64,000 bases of DNA from Salpingoeca rosetta (taxonomy: Eukaryota > Protista > Choanoflagellata): the NCBI GenBank assembly GCA_033442325.1, contig JAWQFM010000008.1, positions 575,851 to 639,850 of the forward strand, in the 5' to 3' direction. The notes under the pieces were generated by a model. That model was not told where the DNA came from. It worked only from the letters and a program-made list of their open reading frames with translations, and did no database searches. Below are positions 30,430 to 37,826 of this stretch, in pieces. The first letter of the stretch is position 1. Each line of letters opens with the position of its first letter. Both the position numbers and the translations under genes were made by a program.

Positions 30430-33400
30430 TCATTCCTTCTTTCCGTTTGGCGCCTTCTTGTCGGCACCATCATCATCGTCCTCATCCTCGTCGTCATCGT
30501 CGTCTGCTTGCTCGCCATCAACATCTTCCAGAAGCATTCGGAATCCCATTTGCACCGTCCCTGTGTCGTGTGGATGTGATGTTGTGTTGGATGAAGAGGG
30601 GTGGCATCGCGTGAGCCAAGCAAAGCGACAGCAACTCACATAGGGATGTACACAACGCACACACGCACACACGCAAGACGAACACTTGTGTTGACACGCG
30701 CGCACACACAAGACGAACACTTGTTATTTCACACACATGCACGCACGAACCTTCCATGTATCCCATCTTCTTCTCGAGTCGCGCGAGACGGTCGTCAACA
30801 GCGGTAAAACGCGCTTCAAGCTTCTGCTGATGACTCTTCAGATGCGACACAAACGTGTTGAGGGACTCCTGCACGAGCGCCTTCACGTTGACGTTGACGT
30901 TGTCCTGCTGCGGCTGTGATGACTGGTGCTGATGCTGGTGGTGATGGTGGTGGTGCGCGCTGCCGTCAGCAGGCGAAGTGGCTGGCGGAGCCGTGAATGG
31001 CGTCGGGGTCTTCATCTGTCAACGATCGATGACAACCGTGGCAACGACGGGAGGTAGAAGAAAGTGTGAGAGGATGGCCAAGGAGGCGAGAATGCGACCT
31101 CAGTGTGCATGGCTGCACACGCACGCACACGCACACATACACGCACACGCACACGCACACACGCACACGCACACATACACGCACACACACACACACTTTC
31201 ACATTACATCACATTGTCACATCACATCACACCACATCACATTGTCACATTACATCACATTGTCACATCACATCAAATCACGACGCACCTCCTTGAGGAT
31301 GGGGTCGGTTGCGGCGGGCGAGTGCACGCATCACCCAGGGCGAATACGGGGACGGCAGCTGCTGCAGCGCAACCACGGGCTTCTTCATCTTCATCGCAAG
31401 CCTGCAGGCAAGAGAGGAGGCAATGGACAAGCATGAGGTGTGTAGGCGCATGTGTGCGTGTGTGCATGTGGGTGAGCATGTGGGTGAGCATGTGGGTGAG
31501 CATGTGGATGAGCATGTGGGTGCAATGGGGTGAGCATCTGGCTTGGCGAGTCACATGAGCCAAGTGAACGAGAAGGAAAACAAGGCAATCGCAGCAAGGC
31601 ACAAATCAAACCGTGGAGAACGCCCATGCACGCACGGCAGTCAGCTGACACTCAACGTACTCTGTGTATGCGCGGCAAGGAAGGCAGTGCTGCAGCTGTT
31701 TGGTGACCACGAGAAGCACAACGGAGCACGCTGCAGCTTGCGCCTGCACTTCCGCGGGTGTCGGCCTGATTGTATGTATGCGTGTGGGGGGGGGCGGTGG
31801 TCGTGGTGGTGCAGATTGAGTATTGATTGAGCTTCAAGCACGAGGGTAAGCCCATGAAATACGCAGATACGGACTGTTCAGGACAGGGAACTCAAAAAAG
31901 ATCTTGTGTCGCTCTCACCTGTTCTTTGGCATGAGCGACTCTGCGTGCATGTCATGCGCCACAGCGATTGCCTCGACACTCTGTTGTATCGCCTACAGCC
32001 GTTTCCACGGAGGAACAAATTCGGTGGGCGAGGGATGAGCACGCGGGCATGCAAGCGAAAATGCCAGCGCATGTGTGTATGGTGTGTTCTTGTGTGTGTG
32101 TGTGTGTGTGTGTGTGTGTGTCTGTGTGTGTGTGTGTGTCTGTCTGTCTGTGTGTGTCTGTGTGTGTGTGTGTGCGTTCGTGTGTTCGTGTGTATGTGTG
32201 TGTGTGTGTAGGTGTGTAGGTGTGTAGGTGTGTCTCTGTGTGTGTAGGTGTGTGTGTGTGTCTGTATGATGTGTATGGTGTGTATGCTTGTACCTCGCCA
32301 TCATTTGACGCGACGACAAGCGCGTGTTTGGATGTCAGCGGCGGTTCCTGTCGATGATTGCACGAACATCACATGGTGAGCAAGTGTATCATGCAGTCGT
32401 GTCCAAGCGTGCACACGTGTGTCTCGTCGGTGTTGGTGTAGCGTACCTGGTCTGAGTGTGAGAGGAAGAGTTGAAGACTTGCGGGAAAGAGGGATGGGTA
32501 GAATTCACTTGCAACAGCCTGATTACAACACATAGCAGCAAGAGTGGTGAGTGCTGGTGTTTAACATGCAGCACATGCTAACAGCACATAGCTTTGCATC
32601 AAGTCACATACACACGCGCACCCCATGCGACACGCAAAACACGCACACACACGCACACACGCAAGTGCCCAGAGTCTTGGCACATCATGCCATTGCACGC
32701 TGCCCACACCTCATCGTCAGCCGTCGACTTCTCCAGCGCCTCGACCTCCTGCAAGTGCATCGCAGTGATGATGAATGGCATTCAGAGGCGTGCCCTCACG
32801 CAAATCACAAACGAGTACAACCGTGATCCCAATCGACACGAATGATCACACACACACACACACAAAGAGAAGAGAGAAGAGAGAAGAGAGAGAGAGACAC
32901 ACACGCGCACACACAAAGAGAAGAGAGAAGAGAGAAGAGAGAGAGACACACAATAACTACACACGCGCACGTGGATGACGAACCGGGAGGAAATCTCGCT
33001 TGAGGTCTGACTTGAGGCTGCAGATGAACGAGAGCTGGGAGAGGAGGCGAGCAGCAGCAATGTCGAGCGACCGGCACTCTCCAGGCTGTTGTCAACACGC
33101 ACACGCACAGGCACAGGCACAGGCACACGCACACGCACATGCACGCAATATGGTGTTTGGGGTTGTGTGGTGAGAGGATATGTGTGGGTATGGGGGAATG
33201 CACATGGCGATGAAGAAAGCACTACATACCATTGACGCGCACTGCAATCAAACACAAACACCAAAGTATTTCACGCATGCACACGTCTGTTGTCTTCCCC
33301 CTGGTCTGCATCTGCGTGCACCTTGTAGTCCTTGAAGACGAGTGCAAGAACGACACCGCTCCTGACAATCTCCTTCACGATGTCGGAGTAGCACAGGTCT

Positions 33401-36400: not shown

Positions 36401-37826
36401 GGCATGGACACAAAACAACAATGCGTGAGGATGCGTGTCAGTGGTTGTACATTCGCCTTCCGAAGGAAGAGCGAGGATAACGATGCAAAGGCAATGCATG
36501 TGTACACACACACACACACACACACACACACACACACACACACACACACACACAAAAAAAAAAAAAAAAAAAGCATCATCGGAGCACACCTTCCATGTGC
36601 TGTCGGAATTGGTCAGCTGGCGCTTGAGTGTGCGAATGTGCAGGATGACATCCAAGATGTCAAACAGCAGCAATGCCCCCTGTCAACGACCCGTAGACAG
36701 CCACAGAGCAAGACGATGGTGTGAGGTGGTGCACGAGGAAATGTGAAGCACATGAGCGCAGGAATTAAATGCAGCATTGGAAGCACTCAAGCCCCAGCCA
36801 AGGAAGCTTGGTCTTGGACATGAGAGGTCGCCAAACCCAAGAAAGAGTCCAATTTCCCACCTTCTCAGTCTCCACAATAGCTTCGGGCTTTTCAAAGAAT
36901 CTGTTTGCCACCAAGGAGGCGCCATTGCTGCCTTGTTCGCCAATTGTCTTCAAGCACGCTGCAAGGGATGTCTACAAGTGTGTGCGTGCGTGTGTGTGCG
37001 TGTGCGATTGTGAATGTGTGTGTTTCGACAGAGAGCGCAGGGGGCACATTTGAGCGTGTGAGAGCGTACGCAAAGCCAGGACTCTGCATCCAAGCAGTGT
37101 GTTTGTGTGGTGGTGGTGGCCTACGCGCTGTTCTGCAGCACGACATTCAACGAGAACAAAAGATGCACGATTGCAGTCTATGCCAACCTTGACGGCGTCG
37201 GATGTTTCCTTTGACAGCACATGTTGCACGAGCGCATCCACTGCACCGGCTTCCTCGAGCTGCTGCAAGTTTGCCTCTTTCACCAGTGCATCCTCCAGCT
37301 CCTTGGCAGCTGCTCAAGATGTGCATGAGACAGGGGGGAGTGAGTGTGTGCGTGCGTGCAAAAGTGCGTGTGTGCATGAGACAGGGGGCGGGGAGTGGGT
37401 GAGTGAGTATGTGTGCGTAAGTGTGCGTAAGTGAGTGAGTGAGTATGTGTGCGTGTGTGTGTGTGTGTGTGTGTGTGTGTGTGTGCGTGTGTGTGTGTGT
37501 GTGTGTGAGTATGTGTGTGTGTATGTGTACAAAAGTGTATGTGTGTGTGCGCGCGATTGGTGGAAGCACATGGGGCAGGAGCTCAGTCATGGGCTCTGAA
37601 GGGTGTTGATGACTCGTCCTGTCTCAATTGCATTGTTCACACCTACACCTGGTCAACCACGATCCCAAAACAACCCAAAGATCGGTTGCCGCCCCCTCAA
37701 ACACACCCACCCACACACGCACATCGCACTCTCCTCCTCTATCCCCTTTCACATTCCTCTTCCTTTGCCTCCCCTGCACTCACCGTCTTCATCGGGCAGT
37801 GCCGCCAGTGCCTCTTTCAGGTTCAT
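30430..37826 (-). CDS. Armadillo/HEAT-repeat protein with a C-terminal TIR-like domain, coiled coil and acidic tail; >20 exons, one clipped by an assembly gap
   Basis: ARM-like helices ([17 protein letters not shown]; [24 protein letters not shown]...[12 protein letters not shown]), then [94 protein letters not shown], then coiled coil [23 protein letters not shown]. The 3' exons are phase-consistent; the start ATG at 37826 is inferred. Confidence 0.75.
35938..36037. other. Assembly gap (100 N) inside the ARM-TIR gene
   Basis: N run adjacent to a (TG)n tract. Confidence 1.

Follow-up and report, generated by a model that had tools for sequence, protein, structure and literature searches.

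PTSG_03169 from Salpingoeca rosetta (Choanoflagellata), a "hypothetical protein" of 679 amino acids (XP_004995755.1, UniProt F2U4F3, singleton cluster), probably combines an ARM solenoid with a strongly diverged TIR_2 domain of the CRxE type that has lost the characteristic glutamate and would act as an interaction module. Its 21 exons are located on the minus strand of the stretch analysed here, a window of 64,000 nucleotides (C8:575851-639850 of the 55.4-Mb, 68-contig genome), and all positions given below are window positions. In its architecture, the protein is a diverged, Glu-less and Pfam-invisible version of the known ARM-TIR arrangement and does not represent a new kind of system. The whole protein was rebuilt exactly from the 21 window exons by a GT-AG exon-chain search starting at the ATG at 37826. 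Exons 17-20 encode residues 549-663. The initial annotation had described them as four minus-strand exons joined in phase directly behind ARM repeats, and this description agrees with our data: the coordinates are identical, the borders are of the AG/../GT type (slashes mark exon borders; acceptors CAG/G, TAG/G, CAG/G and CAG/G, donors GTACAA, GTGAGA, GTACGT and GTGCGT), the phases are 0; 0 to 2; 2 to 2; 2 to 1, and residues 1-548 form an ARM-type solenoid by predicted structure.

Comparison with the paralogues encoded in the S. rosetta genome assigns residues 549-663 with good confidence to a TIR-like domain. A six-frame genome scan with the Pfam model PF13676 detected 52 places other than the PTSG_03169 locus. 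The TIR_2 matches of S. rosetta split into several subfamilies, one of which, the 'CRxE' subfamily, shows the pattern ..SY.W...W.D...SG....AVE.A.VV..C.S.EYK.S..CR.E.EYA..L.KP.VP.....Y.PDGW; the TIR_2 consensus given in the initial annotation is therefore present in the organism's own paralogues. Profile A1 was derived from seven of these CRxE-type domains and profile A2 from an enlarged alignment. A1 matches the solved TIRs Cat1, PdTIR, RPP1, AbTIR, ROQ1, TLR1, TLR2 and TLR6. Run against residues 540-679, the A2 hidden Markov model (HMM) aligned with residues 567-639 (alpha-A to beta-D) and scored 20.0 bits, with an i-Evalue of 7e-5 in a set of 2002 sequences. The reversed sequence gave 1.2 bits, and none of 2000 segment shuffles exceeded 8.1. 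Similarly, hhalign against the paralogue profile yielded scores of 29.6-31 (P 2e-4 to 1e-3), compared to 11.1 +/- 2.0 with a maximum of 19.3 for 400 shuffles. Three further TIR_2 subfamilies of S. rosetta gave profile scores at noise level (11-18) despite sharing the same fold pattern, so the signal is specific to the CRxE subfamily. A tblastn search of the whole 679-residue protein against 35 kb comprising four paralogue loci returned only the TIR cores (E 0.11 and 1.1). As judged from these sequence comparisons, the match to the profile of the SARM-like CRxE TIR_2 subfamily is significant.

Structure prediction points in the same direction. In the ESM Atlas model of the exact PTSG_03169 protein, all nearest cluster models of residues 545-665 are TIR_2, with template modelling (TM) scores by query of 0.71-0.76 over 100-114 residues. 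This comparison covers the 30 nearest models in ten rows, one per family set, and every row contains TIR_2, including a molluscan SARM1-family cluster, two chlorophyte ARM-SAM-TIR clusters, rotifer TIR proteins and bacterial ThsB. An Atlas feature search for the same residues also placed TIR_2 clusters on top (0.89), which is a lead only and counts together with the structural comparison as one source of evidence. A single-sequence AlphaFold2 (AF2) model suggests the order beta (558-561), alpha, alpha, beta (607-610), alpha, beta (635-638), alpha. Overall, the proposed succession of ARM part and TIR-like domain is supported by the predicted Atlas fold, the subfamily profile and hhalign.

The Cys and Glu of C-R-x-E are the sole invariant residues in the A1 alignment. 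The invariant Glu pairs with the Glu of CWDEL in Cat1, QKEL in PdTIR and CLDEL in RPP1; its proposed identity as the catalytic position is thus in line with its alignment to the C..EL Glu of solved TIR NAD+ hydrolases (NADases; NAD+, nicotinamide adenine dinucleotide), and we take it to be the NADase catalytic residue equivalent to E642 of human SARM1. In PTSG_03169, C621-R622-A623-Y624 falls on C-R-x-E in hhalign, MAFFT, tblastn and hmmsearch alike, which corroborates the tyrosine noted at this position in the initial annotation. Between C621 and W648 there is no gap relative to CRTEGEYAYKLGKPIVPIRPEVYVPDGW of the paralogue on contig C12, and the gapless stretch shared with the paralogues includes KKP, VV and W. 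The Tyr624 codon (TAC) lies within exon 19, away from the splice sites, and is two substitutions from a Glu codon. Furthermore, the signature positions have changed from SY.W to VASND (LVVASND), from W.D to DMH and from the BB-loop SG to MPK (LMPK). By sequence, PTSG_03169 therefore has neither the catalytic Glu (C/W..E at the start of alpha-C) nor the box motifs. Tyrosine in place of glutamate together with the lost signatures makes loss of the NADase function the likely reading, and the domain is likely to be without NADase activity.

The ARM part was recognised mainly by predicted structure. The Pfam Arm model stays below threshold (E 0.032, 14.7 bits vs a cut-off of 20.6), and the single-sequence AF2 model shows an entirely helical structure as far as residue 543, with a mean predicted local distance difference test (pLDDT) score of 50. 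Foldseek, queried with the AF2 model of all 679 residues, returned designed ARM proteins and importin-alpha with E-values from 4e-5, and ARM matches dominate this output. The Atlas model (predicted TM score 0.59, pLDDT 0.65) relates residues 1-548 to plakoglobin, beta-catenin, Vac8, ARMC3 and KAP3 clusters, with TM scores of 0.54-0.71 over 390-491 residues. This is consistent with the assignment of IPR016024, the Armadillo-type fold, to PTSG_03169 (Fairclough et al. 2013, PMC4054682). The models thus predict tandem three-helix ARM repeats arranged as a superhelix. In the tblastn comparison with the four paralogue loci, neither SARM1 nor the ARM-TIR paralogues showed a specific similarity to the ARM part.

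Taken together, PTSG_03169 would be a cytosolic protein with an ARM solenoid of ~540 residues as a binding platform, followed by a C-terminal, diverged CRxE TIR_2 domain of ~115 residues from a subfamily that is expanded in the S. rosetta genome. The TIR-like domain would be unable to cleave NAD+ and could instead act as a TIR-type interaction module, which may associate with the cell's catalytic TIR proteins and serve them as adaptor, regulator or decoy. In a possible longer isoform, these parts may be followed by a His/Gln linker, a short coiled coil and an acidic tail, which could mediate self-association. The adaptor or decoy role is conjecture. We consider it rather unlikely that PTSG_03169 is a natural TIR pseudoenzyme derived from SARM-like NADase TIRs by loss of the Glu that regulates or scaffolds the catalytic TIRs of the cell.

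Data on expression are available from PMC4054682 (Additional file 12). Expression of PTSG_03169 was highest in swimmers with 97 fragments per kilobase per million (FPKM); attached cells had 22, 27 and 18 FPKM, colonies 22, 30 and 39, and chains 29. The log2 fold change of swimmers was 1.81 compared to attached cells and 1.68 compared to colonies (P about 2e-7). The title of this file reads 'upregulated in thecate cells' while its columns compare swimmers with other cell types, and the direction of regulation has to be read with this caveat. The gene was not found by name in the literature searched, and a contig look-up with the exact protein gave no match. Searches of the genome for paralogues of exons 19 and 20 led to self matches only, and PTSG_03169 is therefore single copy.

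Several observations weigh against the assignment to the TIR family and are compatible with a generic small alpha/beta (flavodoxin-like) module, in which the beta-alpha-beta pattern would be convergent and the Cys-Arg a matter of chance. The TIR (PF01582), TIR_2 (PF13676) and ThsB models did not match PTSG_03169 or its single exons at E up to 10, a PADLOC search of the protein returned nothing, and a PDB sequence search revealed no TIR relative; a weak chorismate mutase match in the latter (E 0.7) was dismissed as chance. The PF13676 genome scan misses the locus, as does a genome scan with the paralogue profile, because the exons are too short. The hhalign probability is just 20-48 %, and BLASTP against the nearest paralogue, located on contig C1, was not significant. 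In the TIR-like region, the single-sequence AF2 model has a pLDDT of 30-45; when paralogue rows are supplied, AF2 attains 73-86 in no more than residues 590-640, in a partly circular run that lacks beta-A. Neither AF2 run adds independent support, so that a single language-model prediction carries the evidence for the fold. Nevertheless, we regard a generic module as improbable, since all Atlas structural neighbours listed are TIR clusters, the profile score of 20 bits far exceeds those of the shuffles and of the reversed sequence, other TIR_2 subfamilies with the same beta-alpha-beta pattern score at noise level, and the gapless register from C621 to W648 extends over KKP, VV and W. Curated HMMs overlook TIRs as diverged as the one in PTSG_03169.

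Two further explanations accept the TIR origin of the domain and differ in what has become of it. It could still process NAD+ by means of another acidic residue or a different chemistry. Glu626, two residues past Tyr624, is aligned to an additional Glu that some paralogues possess (CRSESE, CRSEGE) but that is not invariant, and could in principle substitute for the lost Glu. Moreover, a 2026 preprint (10.64898/2026.04.20.719644) reports that catalytic activity is common among eukaryotic TIRs, one of S. rosetta that makes cyclic ADP-ribose being an example. In the same preprint, however, the Glu is generally conserved and activity needed the canonical glutamate in every case. Moreover, the first Glu of CRxE is invariant along with the Cys in the paralogues and is replaced by Tyr here, the other signatures are lost as well, and a shift by two residues would turn the side chain elsewhere on the helix; a retained enzymatic function is consequently very unlikely. 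Alternatively, the TIR-like part might be a decaying, functionless remnant of a lineage-specific ARM-TIR duplicate that drifts under relaxed constraint, in which at most the ARM part would have kept a use. This would fit the loss of nearly all TIR motifs, the weak coding score of exon 19 (0.11 bits per codon) and the orphan status of the protein. No orthologues were found: HMMER with the 62-codon exon at 37125-37310 on the minus strand, a query confined to exon 2, returned only PTSG_03169 itself among 1.84 billion representatives, and so did word searches with the whole protein and with residues 478-663 in sets that include EukProt, although word searches are insensitive for such diverged proteins. 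The failure to find orthologues also weighs against our interpretation. On the other hand, all 21 exons are open with canonical splice sites, expression amounts to 18-97 FPKM and is regulated between cell types, and the hydrophobic core pattern suffices for a TIR fold prediction, which leaves a mere remnant only a small chance. We thus favour an expressed ARM protein with a Glu-less, TIR-like interaction domain.

The initial annotation had ascribed a SARM1-like logic to the gene, of which only the succession of ARM and TIR-like parts stands. Like SARM1, the animal ARM-SAM-SAM-TIR NADase, PTSG_03169 has an N-terminal ARM part and a C-terminal TIR_2-type domain, and the SARM1-family cluster matches residues 545-657 of the Atlas model with a TM score of 0.76. 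In contrast to SARM1, the position of E642 is occupied by Tyr624, the ARM part has a far greater length (about 540 residues) and lacks specific similarity, no SAM domain was found with Pfam, and a possible oligomeriser, the coiled coil, would follow the TIR instead of preceding it. PTSG_03169 is accordingly placed outside the SARM1 family. SARM1 homologues of choanoflagellates keep the catalytic Glu, and combinations of TIR with Arm repeats are known (Richter et al. 2018, PMC6040629).

The CRxE paralogues (C12:~1.265 Mb, C1:~2.608 Mb, C1:~3.343 Mb, C14:~0.847 Mb) are the sole TIR subfamily with a measurable signal to PTSG_03169. They share with it the C-R, the hydrophobic beta-C, KKP-VV in beta-D and the spacing to Trp648, and have helical N-terminal regions that appear ARM-like by eye. 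Unlike PTSG_03169, they lie above the Pfam TIR_2 threshold and keep the Glu, SY.W, W.D and SG. The locus with the best local tblastn match to the TIR core of PTSG_03169, L033 (C14:842000-851000, open frame 4461-5840, plus strand), encodes SAM_2 and TIR_2 in a SARM1-like architecture with retained Glu (CRKE), and L030 encodes a long helical N-terminal region and TIR_2. A common intron position with the C12 paralogue near CRxE was considered and rejected, as the introns are 4 nucleotides apart and differ in phase. Similarly, the by-eye likeness of the annotated C-terminus DEDPDAI to DADADAI in a paralogue was dropped for want of statistical support. In the C12 paralogue (L002 1380-1500, minus strand), a long (TTG)n run begins 11 nucleotides into the intron that splits the TIR just past CRTE. 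Apart from the CRxE subfamily, near-identical TIR_2-like copies (NRGLVMTLHPKLE...CDNVLLEWMAMLELQQ...RIVPLF; L020-L026, L028, L029) occur on seven or more contigs and seem to have expanded recently, and a second expanded TIR_2-like subfamily is characterised by FISLRF...FFLVKMCD (L012-L015, L017, L018, L027).

With regard to more distant systems, a likeness to the TIR adaptors of animal innate immunity may be proposed in that PTSG_03169 would use TIR-TIR contacts instead of catalysis; in contrast to these adaptors, PTSG_03169 has no death domain or receptor context. AbTIR, Cat1, RPP1, ROQ1 and ThsB have the fold class in common with PTSG_03169, and the paralogue profile that detects PTSG_03169 matches solved bacterial and plant TIRs, too. 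The bacterial and plant TIR NADases carry their Glu in C..EL or W...E, where PTSG_03169 has Tyr.

A coiled coil had furthermore been claimed to take the place of SAM. Such a stretch exists, looks coding and is accompanied by no SAM domain; it is, however, not part of the public model and depends on an alternative splice site at 30981 or 31335. Positions 30979-30752 carry a coding signal of +45 bits (0.59 bits per codon), similar to confirmed exons, and the heptad periodicity of the 46-residue helix was equalled or exceeded by 1 of 5000 shuffles. The acidic tail at 30560-30433 adds +26 bits and is connected by an in-phase splice from GAAG/GTTCGT to CACAG/GG. Public PTSG_03169 ends 16 residues past the TIR-like exons (...PHPQG, then exon 21 from acceptor 31015), and the coiled coil lies beyond this end in another frame. 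Two in-frame routes with an open frame lead from exon 20 to the coiled coil, namely via acceptor 30981 (783 residues) or via donor 31335 (TGG/GTGATG) combined with acceptor 31015 (779 residues); these joins were checked by length, phase and stops only. Three points speak against inclusion: the first AG past a pyrimidine-rich tract is that of acceptor 31015, the annotated frame scores +8.7 bits over 14 codons of exon 21 compared to -2.8 for the coiled-coil frame, and an ATG exactly at 31015 opens the coiled-coil frame.

The exons between 30430 and 31015 suggest that the public model lacks an isoform or is wrong at its 3' end, or that a small gene has escaped annotation. The last of these, a separate gene for coiled coil and acidic tail, has a considerable but lesser share of the probability. 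It gains from its ATG precisely at 31015 and from the fact that the public model uses this very acceptor, the first AG following the pyrimidine-rich tract, in another frame that scores positively up to the stop at 30966. Yet such a gene would begin only 46 nucleotides upstream of the stop of its same-strand neighbour, leaving no room for a promoter, the two canonical splice routes tie the stretch in frame to exon 20, and a word search revealed no annotated protein of 91-289 residues that contains it. On balance, we lean slightly towards the coiled coil being part of some PTSG_03169 isoform.

The positions of all features are listed in Table 1. An assembly gap lies between annotated exons 5 and 6, whose junction is in phase (1/1), and is flanked by ~140 nucleotides of (CA)n upstream and G/T-rich sequence downstream. 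No coding signal (-2.0 bits) was seen in the final 23 codons of exon 5 as annotated (VGTRLPLL...CQ; 36320-36252), and residues ~148-172 of PTSG_03169 are therefore doubtful. The gap may conceal an exon, and at the end of exon 5 a forced bridging of the gap may have entered the public model. An alternative join of donor 36321 with acceptor 35728 had no better coding score (-10.2 bits). The TIR-like exons, ~3.6 kb from the gap, are unaffected. In general, runs of (CA)n and (TG)n abound in the PTSG_03169 introns. The neighbouring gene PTSG_03168 starts near 23290 on the plus strand and converges tail-to-tail with PTSG_03169; it does not claim the coiled-coil exons. Its product (N-terminus MSDSGASSS...LLRMYYG) is presumably Vps51-like.

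Table 1 Features of the PTSG_03169 locus. Positions refer to the window; the last column gives the basis of each entry or a remark.
Feature	Position	Strand	Basis or remark
PTSG_03169 coding region, public annotation	30966..37826	-	ATG 37826-37824, stop 30968-30966
ARM solenoid (predicted) and linker, residues 1-548, exons 1-16	32447..37826	-	fold prediction, Foldseek, InterPro
Exons 1-4	37826-37784, 37309-37188, 36971-36861, 36679-36590	-	
Exons 5-8	36395-36245, 35670-35614, 35356-35257, 35101-35010	-	
Exons 9-12	34830-34691, 34477-34365, 34113-33996, 33763-33662	-	
Exons 13-16	33513-33322, 33085-32984, 32748-32710, 32518-32447	-	
TIR-like exon 17	32294..32347	-	predicted strand beta-A
TIR-like exon 18	31919..31992	-	alpha-A, beta-B region, onset of BB-loop equivalent; profile alignment begins here
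TIR-like exon 19	31661..31765	-	alpha-B, beta-C, onset of alpha-C; Tyr624 codon TAC 31669-31667
TIR-like exon 20	31289..31401	-	remainder of alpha-C, beta-D, Y.P..W motif
Annotated terminal exon 21	30966..31015	-	16 residues, then stop; coding score +8.7 bits in annotated frame
Unannotated coding-looking exon, His/Gln-rich linker and 46-residue heptad helix	30751..30981	-	coding score, heptad test
Unannotated coding-looking exon, acidic tail	30430..30560	-	stop 30432-30430; phase-1 join to previous exon
Assembly gap in intron 5/6	35938..36037	.	Ns

In practical terms, the analysis provides a domain annotation for a 'hypothetical protein' and indicates that the public model probably contains an error at its 3' end or misses an isoform there. 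TIR domains are now viewed mainly as NAD+-processing enzymes with a broadly conserved Glu, the active TIR of S. rosetta included (10.64898/2026.04.20.719644). PTSG_03169 would be a candidate for a non-catalytic TIR in a choanoflagellate, being expressed and intact in frame while the Glu and all signatures are lost. If it were a pseudoenzyme that regulates or scaffolds the catalytic TIRs of the cell, the switch from an enzymatic to an adaptor-type TIR would have arisen independently outside Metazoa, in a close unicellular relative of animals. The genetic tractability of S. rosetta would allow the origin of scaffold-type TIR functions to be studied in this species.

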